A stretch of 64,000 bases of DNA from assembly GCA_964035545.1 (NCBI GenBank), contig OZ037771.1, positions 12,461,133-12,525,132 of the forward strand, given 5' to 3'. The DNA is from Bugula neritina (Eukaryota; Animalia; Bryozoa). The translations under genes were made by a program, and so were the position numbers. How positions within the stretch are numbered: the stretch's first letter is position 1; each line of letters begins with the position of its first letter. Below, piece after piece: positions 9,086 through 24,999 of the stretch. The notes beneath the pieces are model-generated. The model made no database searches, was not told where the DNA came from, and saw only the letters and a list, made by a program, of their open reading frames with translations.

Positions 9086-12000
9086 TTAAAACTTGATATA
9101 AGTATATTTCTTTACAATAGAGACAATTTCTACATAGCTCGAGCTCCAGGGGACTTTACTGGAGTGCGGAGGGGCAGTTGAGCTTTGAGTAGATTTGCTC
9201 TTCGCTGGTAGTGTAGTTGGTAAGATCTCAGCTGAAACTGCTGTAAAAGGTTAAACATCAATAATTGATTAATTCTATAAAAAATAATAAATTAGATTTT
9301 AAATGGTTTTACCAGAAAATTCAAGGAATCAGTAAATATATATTTTGGGAAGCTTATATAGTTTATTTAAAATTACAGTCTGTGTTGAAACATCAGAAAG
9401 TACAGTTAGGCAAAAACATGTAATTATATGTGTTACAAGTAACGAACAATTAGCTTCATTCATTCATTCATTCATTACTTGTGTTTTAACTGGAAGTACA
9501 TATTCATAAATATATAATTTTCACCAAAATTGCAACACTTTACTACCTTAAGTATAATATAAAATTTGCAGGCATTTAATGTATGTTGATATATTTGTTT
9601 GGCAATGCACACAAAATTTAAGCATTGTTGTTTTTCTATATTGAGTTGTTAGTGTCAAAATATTCATGGCCGTTCCTAAGTTTAGTAGAGTTTAGGGGAA
9701 TTTTGCTATAGATCATTTAAGATAGTCTGGCTTCATTTTAAAATGTCTTTCGATGCATAGTACTGCAATGTATGTATATATAGTGCCTTCTTTGATATTT
9801 CAAAGGGCTATATATATAGTCACAATAGTTGGGTTACATAGTTACAGAAAATTTCTATTTAATCACTAACTTAGTATAATTTTATACAGCCTTGGTCTAG
9901 GGGTTAGAGCGTTTGCCTAGTAAACACGAAGTCATGGGTGCAAACCCTGACAAAGGCCATTGGTGATGTAAGGAAGAGCATCCAGTCATAATTGCTCCTG
10001 TGCCTCATTTTAAATAAGTCCTTAGTCCGCTCTAACAAAAACCCTTTCTATCAGGGGTTTCTCACAGGGATAGTGACTATAAACCTGCATGAGTTTTTTT
10101 TTAGTATAATTTTATGCATTGCAAATTTGAATGTTAAAAACAGGTCAAAAATAATAATATCATAATTGAATCAAATACACAGCCTCATCAACAAACTAAT
10201 AAATGTTTGCAACTGAAATCCAATCGCTGAACTGGAAAAACTAAACTTATTCATTGAGAATAGTTTTTTGTTTTTTTCCCAATTTCCAGGACTTTGTAAG
10301 GCGCCAAATAAGGTTATTTATGAAATTTACTTACTTTTTAAGTGGGGAAATTTTAAAACCAACAACAACAAAAATCTAAGTACATATAAATTTAATAAAA
10401 TACAGATAAATTGACAGCCTAATTGGTAAAACCATTGAATACAATTATTTATATAAACATAAAAAGTTTTCAAAATATAAAGAGATCTTGCATATAAAAA
10501 CACAATAGAATGATACAGCTTATATTTGAATGAATTGTTAATGGTGTAAGAGAGTGAGGGATATGGGATAAACATGCATGAACAAACTGAATTTTGATTA
10601 TGGAATAAAATGTTGTAAATTGCCACAACAAGTTGCAAAAAGCTTCTTTTGTTAAAGTCAAGCATAGATTTAGGAACTGAGATATGAATTCATGCATTTC
10701 CCTTTCAGTTATTTAATTTGACCAGCAAATTGTAAGTTTATGCTGTGCATTTCTCACATATTATAGTTTTACCTGGTTTGGTAGAGCTCAATGGCACTGT
10801 AGATGGAGTTGTTGTAGATGTTGCAGTAGAGGTTGTTGGCATAGGTGCTGCGATTGGCTGAGAAGTTATAGTTTGAGTTGGTTCAGGGAAACCTGAGAAT
10901 GATTTGAATTTTATTTTACAAAAAGAGAGATTGTAAGTGTGTTGACTCCCAAAATATTAGAAATGAGACTAAAAACATTGCAAAATTGCAGAGTTACAAT
11001 CTTAATATAATACTGATTCACTTAATCAATTAACATACATGATATTATGCTAGTTCAATAACTTGTTAACTGCAATAATAGTCTCGGAATGTTTATATTA
11101 GGAGCAAAATTAGCTCAAGATAGTTAAAGCAGTTTTGAATTAAGTCATAAAAATATAATTCTAACAGAAACTTCTTAAATCTTAGCAAATTATTTTTTGA
11201 AAGATGAAGTTTGGTGTGTTTAATTTTGGTGCTGCCATGCAGTATTTTGTGCTTGTTGTACTGCAGTTTTTTATGAAAACATGTTTACAAATTGCATGCT
11301 TAGATTACTATTAACCACGGTTTTTATAAACACCTGATTTATATTTAGATGATTTTTAAAATATAATCAGTTTTGTTAAGAAATGCCGTATTTTAAAGTT
11401 AAGAATTTTTTCACAGAGATTATGAACCAATGTGTGGTATGACCCTGAAGCTCTCTTTGTCCTATGAGATATTGTATGAAAGTGTCCTTGCCTTGAACGC
11501 ATCTGTATACAGAAGCTATCTTTGACCTAAAGGATAGTTGCGATGCACCTCCAGGAGAAGGCAACTTTTATTACTTGAAGACTCGCTATACAATTATAAC
11601 TGGGATATCATGAATAAACAGTGTATTCGTGAGTTGATCTTTTAACGAGCTGCATCCTTGGCATTTATCACACTACTTTATGTTGTGCACTTTTCAGATG
11701 GTATAGTTTTACCTGTTGTGGTAGAGCTCAATGGCACTGTAGATGGAGTTGTGGTAGGTGTTGCGGTAGAGGTTGTTGGTGCATGTGTTGTGATTGGCTG
11801 AGAAGCGGTAGTTTGATTTGGTTTAGAGAAACCTGTCGGCATATATAATCAATTGAGTTAAATATTTTAAAAGAAAGGACTGTAGATGTGTTATAATGGA
11901 CCTTCACAATATCAAAGATGACCAAAAAGATTCCAACAATGCAGACACTAAGAGGCTGGCTATTTACACATGCCTATTTCTGAACACTTAGAATTTTATT

Positions 12001-15000
12001 GCAGTTTAAAGAACATAATGTAATGAGCAAATACTGAGTGTCAGACTAAACTTGCACTTATTTCTAAAGATACACCATATTTTAAGATTTATAAATCCCC
12101 AATGGTTAAAGCTATGTGAATTAGACTTAATTATCATACTATTCTGTAGCATGGTTGTATGAGTTTGGTTGTTGGTAACAGCAAATGTATTTAAATTGGT
12201 GGTTCTTTGATATGTGGTGTTTGATGGTATGGTGGCTGTTGTTGTAGGTATATCTGTAGTGATTGTAGTTGACGACTCTGGTGTAGTAGTAAACATTTCT
12301 GTTGATGTTGTGGGATGTGTTGCTTTGTTCACTTTCAGATCTGAATAGAATATAAACACTTCATAATGCAGTGTTTGTCCCCTATATAGCTGTATACTAC
12401 AGTATTTGGTTTTTATAGAATTCTCTTTGAGCTTCATTATTGGTTAATTCTCTGCTGCAAAACTTAGGTTTGAAGGCTGTTTTCTCAGTAAAAGTTATTG
12501 TGCAATGCAAGTTGATTTATCTATAATGTATATCAGCTATAGTACATAGATAGATAGATATATGACAAGCAAATAAATATCATACCGCTAAATGTTACAT
12601 CAACTGCATGGATAAAAATCAGTACAGGAAATGTGTTTGCTGTGAGAAAGTAGATTCTATAAATACTCAACACTGACTGTAATCTGATGCTGAGCAAAGT
12701 GTCCAGCACTCACCACATCCAACAAACTTTATGTCATCAACAGCAATATATGAGTGCATGTCTAATCCACTGACTCCTTCAAATACCACCTGGAAATAGT
12801 GTCATGTTGTGATAGAATTGTGGGTTTGAATGTAGCTAGTTGCCTTGCATGCTCGTTATGAAGAACAGGTCGAGAAATTGAGTATAAATTACGGTAGCTT
12901 TATTGTGTAGAATAATATAATAGGTCTGCATCCAGCGAGCTCCAGTAGTAGACTGAACTACTCTGGAACTCGCTGGCTTTTATATACAAGCAAGACAAAG
13001 ACATTCCTTTGTTGCCGAGATCGGAGACCCGAAGTGCCGAATATCGGCACCTCGAGAATCCGAAATGCCGAATTGTCATCTCGGCACTTCGGTAGTCCGA
13101 TATGCCGATTCTCAGCATATCGGTGTTTCGGAAGACCGAAGTGCCAATCTCGGCAACCAAGGACACACACACACATAGTATAAATCCATAACAATGTTAC
13201 ACTCACTTTGGGACATTTTCTCAATGTCACAAGCATTTTCACATGCATTGCATTTTTCCTAACGACACTCTTAGATTTTTATACACTAAAAATGTTACAT
13301 TTTGGTTTATATTACTTTTGTTGTCGGACTACTTAAAAGCTCTTGGCAATGTTTTTATTGATAGAAATTTGACGTAACAAACATAGTTTTCGACGTGTGC
13401 GAGCACAAAAAACATGCGACAAAGTCTAATTTGTACAGGTATCATCAAACCTTACATACGATTATAGTGAAGTTTGAGCAGGCAGTTTACCCAATATAAC
13501 AAACAGATTAGTTGTGTGTGTGTGTAGCTGAGCAGAATAACTTGAGCTGTTTATTATCAAGAGATACGTGATAATTTACATGATATACAAAACATACACT
13601 TGGTGCATTATGTGTCATTGCTATATATAAACTTATTCAATGTACCTGAAAGTCTCTTTGCGTATGAGTGCTTATGTCAATGTCGGCCTTGTACCATCTG
13701 TCATCACTTGGAGCTCGTAAATGGAACACAGGTTTACCAAGGTTGTCCAGGTTACTGGTTACGTACACTTTAAAGTTCTCTATAATTTATTGTTTAACAT
13801 TGAGTGACATAACTAATAGTAAGCTGCACAACATTCGTTGTCTATGGAGGACGTCAATATTTTATTAGCGAAACTCTGTTAGGCTTAATGGATACATAAT
13901 AATATCAATTGGTTGTTATTGAACCCATTTAACAAATTATTTCCATATAATTTACGAATTTGGATTGGTGCAATCTTTCAACTATTACCAATGTAAAGTG
14001 TTTTGTCATATTTGTGTCAACTGCATGTTATTAGAATTTTTGATTCGAAAATTTTAATTGCAATTCATTAATGTTTTAAACAATATGTAAAGTGAAATAA
14101 AACTGATGTCAAAGATGAACATTTTGATTCATGACAAAACCAGTGTTCCGCTTTCAATTGTAGCCAACACCTTTTATACTAATCTGAACCATGACCTATT
14201 TTCTTTTTACTATTATGATTACAAGATAACAAATTTGTAATAAAATTCCTGCGTTAACTTTGTACAGGCTGACAATAAAAAGAATACGTTTATTGATATT
14301 GGGCAATCACAAATACTAGTTCAATATAATGCTTTTCTTAATTCATTATTTTATACTTTACTACTTACGACAATTGAAGCCACACACTTTGGCGCAGTTT
14401 CTTTTCATGTAACTTGCAAAATTTACGCAGGTAGTCTCTTTGGTCTGCTCCCACGCGTTGCATGCTGCATCACCTTGATCATTCTTGCAATTAACTAAAC
14501 AGTAAACAGGCATGCGTATTTAGTCATATCTAAGAACAATTATGCACTATCAATAATAAAATAAAATATGCATTTATATGAAACAAATGGTGATTGATAC
14601 GAGGAGATATATTCCAAAAACTGCTAGCAAGTTGTTACTTTTTTATTCATAGAATAATTTAAGATTCTATTAGTCTATGTTTATTTTTGAATTTAAAAGA
14701 GTGCAACTCAAAGTTTTTGGATCTGATGAATTTCATTTAACAAAAACCAAGGTAGAGTGAATGACATGCAAATACAATATGAAGTTTGAGCAATGATTCA
14801 ATAGTAGCCAGGGTTGTGCTTATGGCTGATAAATTAGATGACCGGATATTTTGAAATCATCTTCTTTTAAGAAAAGACAACTTCATATGGATTGACCATG
14901 TAACCAGCGCAATAATTTATTTGATGTATAGAAACATGGAGAGCTACAAGCCTTCCTTCAGACTCAATTTTATGCTTTTCACACACATTATACTCATGTA

Positions 15001-18000
15001 ATATAGACACGTAGTCTTTGTCTTGGCTCTACAGTAAAATGCTTGACATCTTACAAAGCTTGGTGCACATAGTGTGAAGGGTTTCTGTGATTATAATTTA
15101 TAAAGCATTATGCCCAATGCTGTGTATTGATTAACTAAGGCAGCAGCCATAGTCTGGTTCAAAGTTGGAGTCCTGTTTAGTATGACTGAGGTCATTGCCA
15201 TCAGTGATGACAGGAAAAGCATGTGGTCATATAATATCTTTCTACATACAGAGGAAAATAGTTTCTAATTGAATACAATATACTTACAGAAAGTAGGGAG
15301 CAGCCGTGGTCTAGAGGTTAGAATGTTTGCTTAGTGAACATGAAGTCATGGGTTCAATCCCGGACAAAAAACATTGGTGATGTTAAGAAGAGCATCATGT
15401 CATAATTACTCTTGTGCCTCAGCTAAATAAGTTCTTAGGCTGATTTAACAAAAAAAGCCTCCCACGATCAGGGGTTTTCTCACAAAGATGGTGACTATAA
15501 ACTTGCGTAAGTTTATATACTTACAGAAAGTAGGGGAATAAGTATTGTACTTGAAGGTAAGATGACAGTTTGGGCTGATAGTAAATTGGTCTATTATTGG
15601 AGATGTAAAAGTAGCCTTTTCAGTTTTTCCTCGTTGTGTAACAGACATGACAGCAAAACTTCCTGAAAAAGCCAACCATGAAAAGCATACATGTTTCAGA
15701 CAAGATCTATAACAGGTGTAGAGCAATGTATGTGAGGGAGGTAAGGATTTTACCAGTAGAAGAGTTAGAAGCATCAACTGATGGTCCAGTTCCTAAACTT
15801 GGGTTTCCATCGCTACCAATATCCCAGTTCCAGTAGTATGACTGACTGGTCCAACCACACGGAGAGCCTTGCTCAAAGTCACAATCATACATGTCTGTAA
15901 GATAGAGAAACCTAGTAGTTTGGAGTCAGTTAAAGAGGTAGGTGCAGCAATGGGGAAGTTTTTCTACTACTGCTTTTAAATGCAGCTACATGATACAATT
16001 GGTTAAGGTTAATAATCAAGTAAAAGATTTTAAAGAAGTGAGAAACGTGACTGAGCTACTAAGAAAACATAGTAACCATAGTAACCATAGTAACCATAGT
16101 AACCACTATTAACAACTTCCCATTAACAACGTCCATTATACACTCTTTCAATCAACTGGTGTTACTTATAGTGTAAGATTCTCTCAATAGATCATGTAAA
16201 GAAGTTGATAACAGAGAAAAACTTTAACTTGATAGTTTTTGTTAGAGTTGGGTCACATTAGATGAATTTTCTTGTACAAACCAAAAGAGGTGAACTTTGA
16301 TGTGAGAGTTATAACCAATCATACACAATACACAGCCAGCTAAAGAGGAATTTTACTAGCTAACAATATTTGCATTTAAATTTAGTGCTCCGCTACACCG
16401 CTTTTGTTTACAGAGTTACGTCTGCTGCGGTGCAGGTCTATTGAGAGTGTAATTAATAAAAGTGCTTTGAAAATGGAAAACTATAAATTGCTAAAAATTA
16501 AAAGTGAAAGCAAAAACTGGGCTTTCTAAGAGTAATTAGTTCCAATCGGACCAAATTTGCAGATACTTTCCAAATTGGCTATCAAGCATGTTCGCTGCAT
16601 TATTTCGTATTCGTGGATTTTTTTCAATGTGTCCGATGCAACCTCAAACTTATAGAATTTGTACTCTGGTAAAATTCTACTAGTCTGTAAATTAGGTGAA
16701 TAGGTAAAGGTGGCACATTTGTGAGACATGCCGAGGAGTGTTGTCTAAGTAAATCAATGCAAAGACAAACTAAACTTTGAAGTTATCTTTGAAACTTTTC
16801 CACGTAGCCACAAAAGTCTGTAGAGGGCCTATCACTTTCAACATAAATGTTCGAAACCACACTATAATGTGACTCAGTTAGAGTAATAAAACGGATGGCT
16901 GAATAAACCCTACAAATTGCCTACGGAGAAATACCATTATCATGTGTCACCTGAGTCTATACTGTGCACTTTTCAGATGGTATAGTTTTACCTGGTTTGG
17001 TAGAGCTCAATGGCACTGTAGATAGAACTGTTGCAGATGTTACATTAGAGGTTGTTGGTGCTGGTGTTGTGATTGGCTCAGAAGTGGTAGTTTGATTTGG
17101 TTCAGAGAAACCTGTCGGCATATATGATAATTGAGTTGTATTTTGAAAGAAAATACTGTGTAGATGTGTTATAATGGAGTTCTAAAATATCGGAGAAAAT
17201 GATTCTAGCAATGCAGACACATAATGTTAAAATATTAGGATTTTTCAAGTTTAAACATAAGATACTGACTCACGCCTATATCTATTTCTGAACATTTCAG
17301 AATTCATTGTAGGTTAAAGAACGTAATTAGGTAATACTGATTGCATGGCAGACTAAACATGTTCTTATTTCTAAAGATACACCTTATTTGAGATTGTAAT
17401 ATTGTGGTTAAAGCTGCAGGACATAGAATTAAGAATCATACTATTCTGCAGCATGGTTGTATGGGTTTGGTTGTTGGTAACAGCGAATGTATTCAAATTA
17501 GTGGTTCTTTGATATGTGGTGTTTGATGGTATGGTGGCTGTTGTTGTAGGTATATCTGTAGTGATTGTAGTAGGTGACTCTGGTGTAATAGTAAACATTT
17601 TTGTTGATGTTGTGAGAAGTGTTGTTTTGTGTATTTGCAGATCTTGCATATAGGTAATATAAACACTTTATAATGCAGTATTTGTCTCCTATATAGCTCT
17701 ATACTAGAACGTATTTGGTTTTTATAGAATTCTCTTTGAGCTTCATTATTTATTAATTCTTTACTGCAAAGCATGACTTTCAAGACTGTTATCTCAGTAA
17801 AAATTATTGTGAACTGTTAACTTTTTTGTGTTCGCTATGCCAATAAAGACATATAAGTATGCATAGCAAGCTAACACATATATGATCCTATTAAATGTTA
17901 CATTAATAGATAAAGGTACAAAACAGCACAGAAAATATCTTTGATGTAGGCAAGTTTCTTCTAAAACTGACAACACAGCAAAATAATTTTTTGAAAGATT

Positions 18001-21000
18001 TTTGAGTCACAAGAAAAAGCTGCAGAAGATTTATTACTTTCACTATGCAACACCAATTCGGAACTGAAATACTGCTATGTTTAAGTAAGCTGATAAACCT
18101 TTCATTTATTTAGTTAGAGCAGTAAAACTAATAGCCAAATCAATGAACAAGAATTAGGCGCACGGTTCTTTCATTAGAGTGTTATCACTTGAGCTTACTC
18201 TGTGCACTTCTTGGATGGTATACTCTTACCTGGTGTTGCAGAGCTCAATTGTACCTTTGTAGTAGATGTTGCAGTAGAGGTTGTTGGTGGAGACATTATG
18301 ATTGACTGAGATGTTGTAGTTTGATTTGGTTCGGGAAAATCTGAAGGCATTGAAAATTGATTGTTATTGTATTTAGAAACAAGAGATACTTTAAGGGTTG
18401 TACACTCAACCTCTAAAACATCAGAGATGAGAAAAAAATTTCAATTTTATATACTTACAATATTAACATACTATGAAGCCTAATTGCGGGTTTAAAACTT
18501 GTTTGTTCATATATTTCAATAAGAGTTAGTTAAGAACTTACAAAATAATGCATGGTCTTTTGAATCAAGTCACAAAAACAGAATGTTTTTGATAACATAA
18601 ATTTTATACTGTAAATTTTTTGTGTTTGATTTTAGTGCTGCAACACAGTACTTTGAGCTGGCAAATGTTTCTTACATGCAGAGATGCACTAATAGGGGTT
18701 ATCTTCTCTTTGTTATATTATATATTGTATAAAAGTGCAATTGATGCAGAGGTCTCTGTACGCAGTTGCTTGCCTCATTTTCCCTAAGTAATCACACTTT
18801 ATTCAAATTTCCTGCCCCATAGCAATATTTTAGTTTAGTTTAGTTTTGCAATAGCTAAGCTTTCTATTTTATTTAATCTCACAAGCTGACAATGTTCTAG
18901 TGTGCTACGAGTTATTATAGCCATAGCTTAGCAGCTCTAAAATGGTAGAGTTAGGTGCAGGCAATAATGCCTGTGAATTCTAAACTAGAAATGTAGCAAA
19001 AGAAATTCTGTTCAACACGCACCCCAAATCAAAAATTAATAAGAAAGTTACAGAGCTTAGGCTATCTCAAATTTTTTCACTATTGCTCCTAAATAAAATT
19101 GTAAATTGTTACTAATTGACAATTACTACTAGTTTTAGTGCATTTAAATTTGTTCAGTTTATTTTAAGTGAACATAAATAAAAATGCAATAAAAAACAGA
19201 GGAAAAACATTAATATTTTTAATAAAGAGATAGTGTATTCAAATCAGTTACCCAGCAAATGTTTTGAGAAAGAATCTTTAAAAAATCTTTGCCTAGTTAC
19301 ATTTTATGTATTAATAAATTGTTCATGTATATCTTGCTTATCAGCTAAATTTAAAGTCCAGGTATAGTGCACTTAAGCACACAGTTTCATAATAAATATT
19401 ACGAATACGTGTTCTGAATTCAGATATTTTTGCATCTGCAATGTTGTAAAACTGATGCTATAGTTCTTGCTAACTTGGACTTTTGACATTTATTATAGTA
19501 GTTTATAGAAGATATATGGTAGTTCCATTTGTTTTCTTATCCAACAGCATGCATAGCCTGTGTTTTACACATTTAAGGCAGAGAAGTAATCAACTTTTGT
19601 TCTACAGCAGCTAAGACTAGCAAACAATGAAATCAGTAATACTATGTCTCAGCACTGGCGCTGAGCCAAACAAAACTTAATCAGCAGGTGAGTCACCACT
19701 CGAATAAATTAAAGAGCTGTAGGCACAAAATCTATTCTAAAACCAAGATCTGTTTGAGCATGTTATACTATCTTCAAGTTATATTTAACTGATAACCAAG
19801 ATATATGTGAACAATTTAGTATACTGCATAAATGTAACGTTTCACTGATACTTCAAGAGTACACTTGTTATCATTATACCAATATAAGCTGTATTACTTT
19901 TTTTATCAAACTAACTGCATTTACTATCATTATTATACTGCTACTATATGTACTTACTACAGCCAGTGAAGTAGATGTTATCTACAGCAATATATGAGTA
20001 TGTATCCCAGGTAGTAATAGCCTCTATGGTGATCTAAAAAGAATAGGATGCAGCAAGGTTATATATGCATTCGTTTCCTGCAATAATGTAGATCTACTAA
20101 TCTTATAAAATATTATTTTCCCTAAATAATCTCTCAAAAGGTTTATAGCAAAGGTGCTTGTTGAAAGTTGGAACTTACTTGCCTCAAAACAAACCAACAA
20201 TAAAGCTCAGTTTGTGATATTATCACAGAAGTGGTGTGACCAGATGATCTGTTAGCATTTACTAATTACCATGCTAAGCCCGCAAATGATTTCAAAAGGC
20301 TAGGCTAGTGTTCTTATGCTCTAGAATCTAGAGTCTAGATTCTAGATTCTAGATTCTAGATTCTAAAACAATGTGTAGCTGATCAACAGCAGTATTATAG
20401 TAGACCGAAAATGATTAATAAAATTATTTGACCTAATTCAAACACTGCACAGAGTTAATTCAAGCTACTGGAAATCTACAATTGTTCTATAAGCAGCTCC
20501 GAGTTGGAGGTGAATAACGATGTTAGTTTGAGGGTCTCAAGTTTGGAGTTATGTCCCCAACTCCAAGCTTGACACCCCAAACTGAAACATCCTCCCACCA
20601 TTCGAAGCTGCTTATCATAGAACAATTCAGTTGTAACCTGAAAGCCAAAGAATTTCAAAATTTACGCTATACTAGTAACTTCAAGACAAAAAGCTAAGCC
20701 CAACAGGGTGTGGCTATATAGGACAATTATAAGCTAACTTCCTTGTTCTGAAGTAACCTAACATTCTAGGGAGAGTAGAGGGCAATAGCCCAAACTATTA
20801 GTTCCCAAAGTGTTGTATTAGTCACCAACTTCAGACTTCAGGTCCCATAATTATAAACAATACAAACACAAATATTATAATATACATAATTGTATAAATG
20901 CTATGTATATTTCTTTAACAGCTAGATAATAATAAACGTTAAATAATATGTTGACATGTGTAAGTGTGAACAATGTTGTTAGCAATTTTTCTCACTGATC

Positions 21001-24000
21001 ATCAACAAACATATAATCGAAAGTCATAGTCAAAATAAGTGCAGCTAGCTTGTTTTAAACTATAAATAACTCAAACTAATTTATTTGGTTCCTATATTTT
21101 TAAATTTAGAATGATACATAATCAAAGAAATATATCGCAACCTAAATCATATTTAATTTCTTCTGTATTTCAATAAATATTATAGTATCCAAAAATTGTA
21201 GAAAGTATGACACCAGTCAAGCTACTATACTATAGATCAATTTACCTCCATATTCTGTCCTGTATACCTTTCAGGTATGACAACTGTTTCATCTGTCCAC
21301 GTATCACCGTAAACAACGTTAATCGCGAACTCCTCCTCCTCCTTACCCACGGGACCATCGACCTTCACCTTTAACTTAGCTGCAAACATGCCGTAGTTTC
21401 AAGTCCAATCTCATAGTTTAGTATATTTATTTCACTTTTTATTGCTGAATGTTCATGATTCATTAATACATTTATAGTATTGGCATCTTCATTTTGCTTA
21501 AATTTTCTATTATAAATTATATATACACTAGACAAACTTATTATTCGAATAGAAAAATCTATAGTTGAATAAAAGCTGCAAGTAAGAGTTTTACTAAAAA
21601 TGTATTATTAAATTTGTTTCAATGAAAAAATGTTGTTTTAAATTCTCTTATTTTTGAAAGAACCAAATATTATTTGCTACTAAAACAACACATGCGTTTA
21701 GGGCTACTTTTTTGTACTGTATTACATTACTCTGCTTTACAATTGGCAGACATATAGTTAAATTAGAATAGAGAGTTCTGTTATAGACGAAGGCAGATAC
21801 CTTTGCAAGTTGGTGATCTGGGAATGTCATATACTTCTAAAAATAAACTTGCAAAGATACTGCATACTTAATGTATTTGTATTTATTTGGTGTTCAGGAA
21901 ACTACATGATATGAACACAAATTACGTCAAACACGGTTCTTGCTTATAATAGGTCAAGTCAGGGACTTTTCAAGTAAAAAACGGATGATACAGCACTTGC
22001 ATAGAATAATATATGCAGCTATACAAGTAGCAACACTTACAGCATTGAATTCCACAAACTTTGGCACAGTTTGTTTTCATGTATCCGTAAAACTGATGGC
22101 CAGGAACGCACATGGTAGCCCGGTTTTGAGGTGTGTCTAACCGTTGACATATTAAGTCTCCTTTCTGATTAATACAAAATCCTGTGTTAAGAAAAAAGGC
22201 AATTTTGCTCATATATTTGCTCACATCAATAGAGTACATAAACTGTGGATATCATAGAAAAAGCCAAAAAGGTACCAAGCAGTTTAAAGAAAAGCTATAA
22301 TATATTGAATAATATAAACTATAGAACATAAACTTATCATAGTGTAACATTATCATTTCAATTAGCTTTAATTAAAGAATTCCTGACACATGCTCTATTT
22401 ATGCAGTAGTAAAATATATTCATATAATTCCTAGCTAACATCTACAGACTGTTTGATGGTTGCATGCTCAAACAGTTTGGCATTATAAGAAAGTCTATGA
22501 TCGCGTTGTAGAAGTTTCTGAAGTCCATGTTCTACTATAAAGCTATAAATATTAAATATTGCTAAGTTTTAATGCATGCTATTCTTAGTTGCTGATTGAA
22601 ACACACAGCTTAATCACTCAAATGGCTCGCAAAATCAAAGTTTAAACTTTCAATATTTTAATACTGCGTAAATAAACTGTGTAATTGATTTCTTATATTA
22701 ATAATTCCTCTAGAATTAATTATTATTACAAACTTATTTGTAGGCTCACAAATAAAATAGTAGCAATATCAAAGTTTATTCCTATAAGATATTACAAATA
22801 TATCATTTATATACTTTTATACTTTCTTTAATATATCTAGGCAAGCAATGCATATATAGGTATATATATAATATGCAATCACTAATGCTCGTAGCTAATG
22901 ACCTATAGGACATAAATTTTAAATAAGTCAGTTTGCAACATAATACTCTTGTTTGTAATGAAATACCTAGGCTGAACATATATTATAAGTATAATAGTTA
23001 CTTAATGTATAATGTATAATGTTCTATTTTAATACAAACTTGGATATCCTGTAAAAATGCTATAGGAAAAATGAAGCTGGCAATTAGAGCTCATTGCTGA
23101 ACTAGCCATTGGTGGAGAGATCAAGGACATTTTTGCTTCTGTTTTCTCTTTTAAAATGGCAACATTGGCAAAATGACCTAAAAATACAGAAATGTTAGTA
23201 TAATGATATAATTTATTATAAGTGCCTATAAAAGGAAAAAAATAAAGCTGCATATGTGTGCGTGTGTGCGTGTGTGCGTGTGTGCGTGTGTGTGTGTGAG
23301 CCTACTTGAACTTGAAGTGATATAGGTATAACCTGAGATCTAGTGAGTGAATGTATTATGAGAAATAAGATAACTCCAATAACAAAAAGCTGGATAGCTG
23401 AGTGGTTATACATTGTAACTTTTACATCAATAATAACTGGTTTTAGGAGAGCTTTGATATGCACATGGGTCATTTTACTCAATTTATTTACAATTTAGCT
23501 GCTAATGAACATGGGTCTTTGCTCAAAACTAGTAAAAAATCAATAAATACATTTAAATAACCAAAGTTATTTTTTAATTTTGCTTGACTTTTCATGTTTT
23601 TTCCTAATTAATCAGCTATGTTTGATTGAGGACCATCACGGTTTTTTCCGTAACAGTCCACAATCCAAATTATTAATTAAGTAAAATGACCCACATTCTG
23701 CTTGCATTATTACCCACATTATACTCTGCACAACTTACAAGCAGCTATGATATAAATGTTCTAATTACAACATCTCGCTGGTGAAATAAATTTTGTTTAC
23801 CAGTGGATTGGCCTGAAGCATCCGTTGGAGGTCCAGTAGCACGTGACGGCACACCCCCTTGTCTTCGCTTCCACTGGAAATCCCCATATGAGCTGTGTGA
23901 TGTCCAGTTACAGAAACTGGTTTCAAAATCACAGTCATAGACACTGATTGCTTTGCTTCCTGCAACGTGATAGTTTACTTATTAGTATAACTTATTAATT

Positions 24001-24999
24001 ATTATTATATAACTTATTCTTATAGCTTATTAGTATATAACTTATTATATAACTTATTCTTATAGCTTATTATAGTATATAACTTGTTATTTTATAACTT
24101 GTTATTATATAACTTATTATTATAACTTATTAGTATATAACTTATTAGTATATAACTTATTAGTATATAACTTATTAGTATATAACTTATTAGTATATAA
24201 CTTATTAGTATATAACTTATTAGTATATAACTTATTAGTATAACTTATTAGTATGTAACTTATTAGTATAACTTATTAGTATATAACTTATTAGTATAGC
24301 TTACTAGTGTAATTTATTAAAAGCTGCTCAAAATACTAATAGGTCTGTTGCATATAAGAGCTTCAATTTGCACTTTTGAATTGTACCTTTTCTTGTAGCT
24401 CACCTTAGAACAGCATATTATATCGCACTAAAACTCTTATATGAAATGCAACAGCTAGTGCACATTGAAGTTAAGCTATATTCATAGTGAAAAAAGTGCT
24501 GAATTTTCATTTTCAAAATAAATATTACATTTTAAAAAATAGCACATATTATACCATTCATTAGCTAAATGAGCTTCTAAGCTGAAAATTACTCTTTAAA
24601 ACAAACTATTATAGCACTTATAACAACCGTTTTGAAAAATTCTTCAATATAAATTTCAGAAAATGTTATTTACATGATCTAGTACCAATTTAATAAAATG
24701 TTCAATAGTAAATTACTATCATTTTTTGCAACTGTCTTTATGTTAAACTAGAAATAAAAATTAAACTTCAATGATGTTTGTAGAATCCGTAGGACATACA
24801 AATAAAGCTATGTTTGTTGAATCACTTGAAAGCTAGCTGTACAGCTTGTTGATCACAACTCTGTTGGCATAAAGAAGTAAAAATACAAAAATTACATAAC
24901 TGTCTATAGAATCGATAGTAATTGAGATGAAAATATTAAAAAAAGCTTACCTCCTATAAACAAAACAACTGCGAAGAAAAAAGCCGTGGTGAAATGCAT
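9086..24999 (-). CDS. Secreted protein: signal peptide, [MAM with nested ShKT], mucin, [MAM with nested ShKT], mucin
   Basis: Exons 24999-24951 (MHFTTAFFFAVVLFIG), 23959-23801, 23177-23040, 22181-22041 (ShKT), 21379-21246, 20033-19958, 18340-18230, 17642-17442, 17111-16992, 15894-15754, 15662-15525, 14494-14369 (ShKT), 13779-13646, 12789-12714, 12340-12140, 11832-11713, 10892-10773, 9240-9086. All phases compatible. MAM motifs CDFE..CxW, TGPxxD, LISP, CxLxFxY, IAVDDI/IAVDNI. The 3' end is less certain. Confidence 0.85.
9886..10100 (+). mobile_element. tRNA(Thr)-derived SINE family 1
   Basis: tggtctagggg A box, ctAGTaa anticodon-like loop, shared body; TSD ttagtataattttat (9871-9885, 10101-10115). 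Confidence 0.88.
13005..13163. repeat. GC-rich fold-back element built from gccga/tcggc units (MITE-like)
   Basis: tcctttgttgccgagat ... atctcggcaaccaagga inverted ends, with internal inverted motifs. Confidence 0.65.
14369..14494 (-). CDS. ShKT domain exon 2 (inside MAM domain 2)
   Basis: FNCKNDQGDAACNAWEQTKETTCVNFASYMKRNCAKVCGFNC; six Cys with the ShK C-terminal pattern MxxxCxxxCGxxC; 126 nt, phase 1-1. Confidence 0.85.
15296..15514 (+). mobile_element. tRNA(Thr)-derived SINE family 1 inserted at a splice donor
   Basis: gggagcagccgtggtctagagg head; flanking direct repeat atatacttacagaaagtaggg (15278-15298, 15515-15535). Confidence 0.88.
22041..22181 (-). CDS. ShKT domain exon 1 (inside MAM domain 1)
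   Basis: FCINQKGDLICQRLDTPQNRATMCVPGHQFYGYMKTNCAKVCGIQC; 141 nt, phase 1-1. Confidence 0.85.
23975..24310. repeat. AT-rich 14-16-bp minisatellite (tataacttattag[ta]) next to a splice acceptor
   Basis: Directly visible. Confidence 0.9.

Follow-up and report, generated by a model that had tools for sequence, protein, structure and literature searches.

The window analysed here is a stretch of 64,000 nucleotides of Bugula neritina DNA (contig OZ037771.1, C7:12461133-12525132 of the 216-Mb, 321-contig assembly that served as the genome searched). It is AT-rich, with a GC content of about 0.33, and carries on its minus strand a gene with two MAM units, A followed by B, each of which can be read directly from the sequence as five exons. 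The third exon of each unit encodes a six-cysteine module of the ShKT type. We consider it quite probable that the locus is a gene for a modular, secreted, mucin-like glycoprotein, consisting of a signal peptide, MAM-A, a Ser/Thr/Pro-rich linker, MAM-B and more linker, in which a ShKT module is nested within each of the two MAM domains.

Unit A consists of MAM-A exon 1 (23801-23959, 159 nt), with the pattern CDFE...C.W...GP..D; exon 2 (23040-23177, 138 nt), ending in ...NCQLHFSYSIFTGYP; the ShKT-A exon (22041-22181, 141 nt); exon 4 (21246-21379, 134 nt), starting with (S)KLKVKV; and exon 5 (19958-20033, 76 nt), which reads ITIEA...YIAVDNIYFTGC and is matched by its unit B counterpart in tblastn. 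In unit B these correspond to exon 1 (15754-15894, 141 nt), exon 2 (15525-15662, 138 nt), ending in ...NCHLTFKYNTYSPTF, the ShKT-B exon (14369-14494, 126 nt), exon 4 (13646-13779, 134 nt), starting with (Q)NFKVYV, and exon 5 (12714-12789, 76 nt), which reads VVFEG...YIAVDDIKFVGC. All of these lie on the minus strand and are bordered by AG and GT. The exons of 138, 134 and 76 nt thus have the same length in both units, while exon 1 differs. The first three exons of each unit, including the six-cysteine exon, are of phase 1-1, and the latter is a multiple of three nucleotides long in both units. The initial annotation of this stretch had proposed these coordinates, lengths and phases, and direct reading of the sequence shows them to be exact.

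The four conserved cysteines of the MAM domain and its CDFE, C.W, C.L.F.Y and IAxDDI...C motifs are present in order in both units, with the extra exon placed between '...C-x-L-x-F-x-Y-x-x-x-x-G-x-x' and 'x-L-x-V-x-V'. Pfam and other profile scores were calculated exon by exon. Against the Pfam MAM profile (PF00629, cut-off 26.4 bits), exon A1 alone reaches 28.6 bits, above the cut-off, and exons B1 (21.6 bits), B4 (13.1 bits) and B5 (13.8 bits) all match as collinear segments. Exon 1 covers profile positions 1-39 in both units, exon 4 positions 89-130 and exon 5 positions 131-152, with the break at about 88/89. A hidden Markov model (HMM) of 140 states, built from 20 MAM open frames of this genome that have no interruption, aligns exon 2 with states 36-71 (45-68 for A2, 39-71 for B2), leaving four spare residues that extend to about state 75. 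Exon 4 starts at state 77 with its first residue (77-112 for A4, from exon residue 1; 78-117 for B4), and exon A5 covers states 120-139. As exon 2 reaches to about 75 and exon 4 begins at 77, no MAM segment has been lost and the two halves abut. The proposal that both MAM domains are split at the same point, between the CxLxFxY strand and the xLxV strand, is therefore upheld by the collinear profile coverage. When the exon-2 and exon-4 profiles were searched singly against the PDB, only chance matches were obtained.

The structural location of the split was assessed with a model of an uninterrupted MAM paralogue from the same genome (L011), which has a predicted local distance difference test score (pLDDT) of 79.8 and a predicted template modelling score of 0.79. 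Its best matches are solved MAM domains, those of neuropilin-1 (5l73), enteropeptidase, the meprins and PTPRK/PTPRM. In this model, the two motifs that flank the extra exon form adjacent antiparallel strands, residues 81-90 and 94-103, with a three-residue turn between them; judged from the homologous site in the model, the insertion point is at the turn end of a MAM beta-hairpin. The MAM(ShKT) arrangement occurs in four copies in the genome, in two units of each of two paralogous genes, and once more in a contig of a sibling lineage. This recurrence argues against a chance pattern.

At least 54 canonical ShK matches in the genome score higher than the Pfam cut-off. In an alignment of the nested modules with ten of these canonical ShKT domains, all six cysteine columns are invariant, the Y-M and N-C motifs are also common to both, and the sequence identity is 29-46%. 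A profile made from the four nested exons matches multi-ShKT proteins with E-values of about 1e-6 in a library of 1.84 billion representatives. An AlphaFold2 model of exon B3 (ShKT-B), 41 residues long, has a pLDDT of 86.7 and contains four short helices. Comparison of this model with 48,161 PDB representatives using VIA-align gave nine chains with Z of 2 or higher, and eight of the nine are ShKT peptides (7l2g, 2k72, 6dri, 2mcr, 2lg4, 8sed, 6ckf and 7od2), which superimpose with a root-mean-square deviation (rmsd) of 1.5-2.5 Å over 34-38 residues. They are Nak1 (7l2g), the toxin domain of MMP23 (2k72), Acan1, BmK1, aurelin, ShKT-Ts1, OspTx2a and AeTX-K. The best match is 7l2g (Z 4.8, rmsd 1.5 Å over 37 residues); such a low Z is expected for 41 residues, yet the specificity of the matches to ShKT peptides is telling. 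Foldseek returned no match with the 41-residue model.

In known ShKT structures, the disulfides connect Cys1 with Cys6, Cys2 with Cys4 and Cys3 with Cys5. One or two residues precede Cys1 in the nested exon, which ends exactly at Cys6. We also considered the Lys/Tyr pair near Cys4 as a mark of a potassium channel blocker and rejected it: the same 'YMK' is common in the ordinary ShKT domains of this genome, and for this reason no claim of channel blocking is made.

A second gene with the same ten exons, splice borders and phases is located on another chromosome-scale contig, at C2:17796901-17807428. Only the exon blocks of the two genes still align, with 69-92% nucleotide identity. As the introns no longer align (dS 0.3-1.5), the duplication that gave rise to the two genes must be old. 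At the protein level, ShKT-A is 91% and ShKT-B 93% identical between the paralogues, compared with 73-89% for the MAM exons. By the Nei-Gojobori method, the ratio of non-synonymous to synonymous substitution rates (dN/dS) of the pooled ShKT exons is 0.078 at a dS of 0.56, with nine non-synonymous and 19 synonymous changes (Fisher p 8e-10); separately, the ratios are 0.079 for A and 0.077 for B. For the pooled MAM exons the value is 0.157, and non-synonymous change is lower in the ShKT than in the MAM exons (p 0.016). All 24 ShKT cysteines are kept across the four nested exons. Judged by these substitution patterns, the ShKT inserts are real coding exons under selection, and are more constrained between the paralogues than the MAM exons.

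Several observations weigh against the nested, functional gene proposed here, starting with the insert itself. Its scores with the Pfam ShK profile (PF01549) are 14.6 bits for A and 16.8 bits for B, under the cut-off of 20.9, and the spacing between Cys5 and Cys6 is x3, not x2. The loops are also longer than usual, by three residues between Cys1 and Cys2 and by two or more between Cys2 and Cys3. Because of the sub-cut-off scores, the longer loops and the Cys5-Cys6 spacing, we call the insert a divergent ShKT-fold module. The six-cysteine register, the predicted structure and the VIA-align matches support its original assignment to this fold, even if the Pfam score stays under the threshold. 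The low profile scores could also be taken to mean that the six-cysteine exons are chance open frames or belong to a separate transcript nested in the MAM introns. The exons, however, lack a start and a stop codon, and the acceptor and donor that border them are in the only phase compatible with the neighbouring MAM exons, in four copies and in the fifth from the sibling lineage. They are also under purifying selection in the frame set by the MAM exons, and we regard a separate origin of this kind as very improbable.

A second group of observations pointing in the same direction comes from the sibling lineage, which is represented by contigs from the Joint Genome Institute (JGI) that share 84-92% identity with the window over both exons and introns. 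These contigs bear the label AY690838, the accession of the mitochondrial genome of Bugula neritina (PMC2678162). One of these (L008, from JGI 3300002729) contains all five exons of unit B, with the same splice sites. In its exon B2, however, a four-nucleotide insertion (CATG; L008:225-400) relative to both paralogues of the window genome causes a frameshift, which may be an assembly error, or may indicate that the gene is relaxing or decaying in that lineage. The dN/dS values relative to the sibling lineage are also higher, 0.26 for ShKT-B and 0.44 for MAM-B, based on few changes.

The third group concerns expression. Among the public sequencing runs searched for the locus, only one DNA run (run X1) and no RNA run was found. 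The contigs from this run span the introns and contain no splice joints; they have allelic differences in exons A2 and A4 and none in the ShKT exon. In the library of 1.84 billion representatives, the nested-exon profile found no transcript-derived or annotated protein with this exon. Its five matches below 1e-3 are a 50-residue open reading frame on genomic DNA of the sibling lineage (P0001, from two JGI data sets and one Sequence Read Archive run), two multi-ShKT proteins and two repetitive proteins, the last of which are taken as noise. A homologue search with a MAM alignment that included the window exons retrieved 46 MAM proteins of 72-274 residues, none of which contains PF01549; as its length range excludes long proteins, this is a weak test.

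The failure to find expressed sequence in the public runs and in the library, the frameshift and the sibling-lineage ratios of 0.26-0.44 or higher would all fit the view that the locus is decaying, or non-functional, within a huge MAM family of fast turnover, and that its nested arrangement is an evolutionary accident without present function. The family itself, with at least 155 MAM exon matches in big tandem arrays, some of them with stop codons, would provide a suitable background for such decay. On the other hand, all 20 exons of the two paralogues are open and their splice sites intact, dN/dS between them is 0.08-0.27 at a dS of around 0.3-1.5, no ShKT cysteine has been lost, and the frameshift is known from a single metagenome contig. 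Decay of the locus thus appears improbable to us, albeit less so than a separate transcript, and a functional MAM(ShKT) gene remains the preferred reading.

The MAM family of this genome, with its exon-level matches in tandem arrays on C4, C1, C7, C2 and C3, also provides information on how the nested arrangement arose. Most MAM units are encoded by a single exon straight across the insertion point, and other paralogues have an intron about seven residues downstream, or a phase-1 intron two residues upstream (L037 and L039). A general presence of an intron at the insertion point in MAM genes was considered and rejected, as most have none there or have it a few residues off. Two ShKT-less paralogues (L038 and L041) have a phase-1 intron that splits precisely the corresponding codon, the Gly of 'I/M-G|S/T-L'; this site lies nine residues beyond the conserved Phe, with x-L-x-V after it. 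By position and phase, these introns represent the empty site, which points to classical exon shuffling. Arrays were located at C4:5384000-5493000, C4:1733000-1758000, C4:19840000-19854000, C1:33306000-33314000, C1:35345000-35368000 and C7:15163000-15170000; intron positions within the domain vary among them, and some copies contain stop codons. Canonical ShKT exons also form a tandem array, at C4:5307900-5314200, some 70 kb from the largest of the MAM arrays.

A symmetric phase-1 ShKT exon placed in a phase-1 intron keeps the reading frame, and it is the classical rule of exon shuffling that a symmetric exon is accepted by an intron of the same phase. Elsewhere in the gene this phase rule is also obeyed: phase 1 is found at the end of the signal-peptide exon, and phase 1-1 in MAM exons 1 and 2 and in the linker exons. 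In the subset of the genome's ShKT domains that was looked at, several canonical ShKT exons end in phase 1, one residue after Cys6. Modules of the nested type are present in the genome only in these four copies, all in the same codon and phase. Because the inserts of units A and B are each other's only relatives in the genome, the insertion took place once, before the A/B duplication, in agreement with the order of events first suggested for this locus. A symmetric phase 1-1 ShKT exon would thus have been shuffled into a pre-existing phase-1 intron splitting the Gly codon of the MAM sequence 'IG|SL'; tandem duplication of the MAM(ShKT)-plus-linker unit would have produced A and B, and a later duplication of the whole gene would have produced the copies on contigs C7 and C2. 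We consider this sequence of shuffling, tandem duplication and gene duplication to be largely shown.

The initial annotation also suggested that the ShKT exon could be included or skipped in frame. This is correct for unit A only, where skipping joins A to CT and restores an ACT codon (Thr), both in the window and in the paralogue. In unit B, skipping creates a stop codon in all three copies: T joined to AG gives TAG in the window and in the sibling lineage, and T joined to AA gives TAA in the paralogue. The ShKT-B exon is therefore needed for the full protein. Regulated cassettes that generate both MAM-only and MAM(ShKT) isoforms would explain why both exons are symmetric, of phase 1-1 and multiples of three, why the threonine codon is restored in unit A of both paralogues and why the homologous intron exists without an insert in other MAM genes. 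Against this, skipping in unit B would lead to a truncated or degraded product, the splice sites have an ordinary appearance and the very low dN/dS suggests that the exons are usually translated. Regulated skipping therefore seems unlikely to us, though it is the least unlikely of the alternatives considered. Inclusion of the ShKT exon appears obligatory in unit B, where skipping makes a stop codon, and is probably constitutive in unit A.

Upstream of unit A, the first coding exon (24951-24999, minus strand) contains the ATG and a hydrophobic stretch, MHFTTAFFFAVVLFIGG, which by eye resembles a signal peptide; it ends in phase 1 and belongs to a block conserved with the C2 paralogue. Between the two units, three linker exons are located on the same strand: X1 (18230-18340, 111 nt, 61% Ser, Thr and Pro), the Thr-rich Y1 (17442-17579, 138 nt, 49%) and Z1 (16992-17111, 120 nt, 62%), all conserved with the paralogue. 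After unit B, the Thr-rich Y2 (12140-12277, 138 nt), Z2 (11713-11832, 120 nt, 69%) and Z3 (10773-10892, 120 nt, 67%) follow, Z3 being the most 3' exon read. The six linker exons, repeated in lengths of 111, 138 and 120 nt, are all of phase 1-1, and their combined Ser, Thr and Pro content of 49-69% agrees with the mucin-like stalk already postulated for this protein; in a mucin-type linker, such repeats would be O-glycosylated.

The introns and surroundings of the gene contain several repeats. An interspersed repeat of 216 bp (15299-15514, within 15278-15535) starts nine nucleotides inside the intron that follows exon B2. A perfect 21-nt direct repeat lies on either side of it and copies the last 11 nt of exon B2 plus the GT donor, so that a second copy of this donor is present 237 nt downstream. 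A first survey of the genome gave around 3,300 candidate matches to the interspersed repeat, and the 39 further copies that were scored show 82-84% identity to it. The sibling-lineage contig contains the element as well. In the B4-B5 intron, a stretch of 385 bp (12809-13193) contains many short inverted repeats of the type 'cggcacttcgg'; it is not present in the sibling-lineage contig L008 and is likely a young foldback insertion, or one resembling a miniature inverted-repeat transposable element. A 15-nt unit is repeated in tandem at 24095-24275, in the intron that separates the signal-peptide exon from MAM-A exon 1, and in one frame reads as repeated 'YTNKL'. Finally, positions 1-1500 of the window are occupied by about 1.5 kb of near-pure trinucleotide repeat with a strong GC skew, which on the minus strand reads as poly-Ser with scattered Asn.

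Turning to known proteins, our search of the full-text literature for MAM together with ShKT and for domain insertion in MAM yielded side-by-side architectures only. These are found in astacin metallopeptidases such as Hydra HMP2 and other ShKT-astacins, and MAM/ShKT astacins of this kind are listed for Bugula neritina itself in a review (PMC9848320, PMC4460706). The Bugula gene resembles them in combining the two extracellular modules in one secreted invertebrate protein. In the astacins, however, the domains are arranged in tandem after the protease, whereas the Bugula gene has no astacin domain and its ShKT lies inside the MAM domain, at profile position 88/89. The mucins Tc-MUC-1 to -5 of Toxocara canis consist of a signal peptide, a Ser/Thr-rich mucin core and two ShKT (SXC) domains (PMC9477421). 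They are likewise secreted mucin-type proteins with non-toxic ShKT modules, thought to be protein-binding in Toxocara (PMC9477421), but these modules are free-standing and terminal, the mucins have no MAM domain and they come from an unrelated phylum, while in Bugula the ShKT is grafted within a MAM. Canonical MAM domains (5l73, the meprins 4gwm and 7uab, PTPRM and PTPRK 2v5y and 8a1f, and enteropeptidase 8zi4) share the same four cysteines and motifs, but the hairpin that follows their CLxFxY strand has a loop of just 3-5 residues and carries no additional domain.

Domains nested within other domains are known from the integrin alpha-I (vWA) domain in its beta-propeller, from the PA domain in subtilase and M28 proteases and, in cattle antibodies, from the cysteine-rich 'knob' on the hairpin of the ultralong third complementarity-determining region of the heavy chain (CDR-H3). 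In these, as in the Bugula protein, a compact guest with adjacent termini is placed in a loop or hairpin of the host. The domains are different, and in the Bugula gene the exon mechanism is visible, in the form of a symmetric guest exon and of introns that mark the empty site. MAM(ShKT) is thus a new architecture in which both the domains and the mechanism of their combination are known; its footprints at the exon level are unusually clear, and its function is inferred only.

In known ShKT structures, the bond between Cys1 and Cys6 places the ends of the module side by side. Because its ends are adjacent and the exon spans Cys1 to Cys6, the module could plug into a hairpin turn: the Cys1-Cys6 bond would let it replace the turn and leave the MAM sandwich unbroken, and the ShKT would project from the MAM domain as a rigid, disulfide-locked knob. 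Known roles of MAM domains include adhesion and oligomerisation. When attached to mucins and proteases, ShKT modules are regarded as binding units (PMC9477421, PMC9848320). On these grounds we interpret the gene product as a glycosylated molecule that is secreted and would serve in recognition or adhesion; by analogy, its job would most likely be extracellular binding or recognition, and a role as a channel-blocking toxin is neither supported nor excluded. More tentatively, the MAM hairpin could be a natural display scaffold that carries a ShKT knob on a glycosylated stalk, comparable to the knob of the cattle CDR-H3, as part of a recognition or defence molecule of a colonial marine animal whose binding tip evolves separately; we put this forward as a possibility that is less likely to be right than the nested architecture itself.

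Exon shuffling is usually invoked for domains strung end to end. To our knowledge, there are few documented cases in which one domain was shuffled inside another, especially with the states before and after the event in the same genome. If correct, the arrangement described here would constitute an apparently uncatalogued nested architecture, MAM(ShKT), whose shuffling event can still be read at the exon level, with the "before" state, an empty intron in paralogues, and the "after" state both preserved in one genome. It suggests a reason why ShKT suits the part of a guest, its ends being tied by the Cys1-Cys6 bond, and that the MAM hairpin would tolerate a graft, which would be useful for protein engineering, such as the display of loop-grafted knottin or ShK peptides. 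The importance of the finding would be less if the gene proves to be unexpressed; for bryozoan biology, it provides a candidate secreted recognition or adhesion protein.

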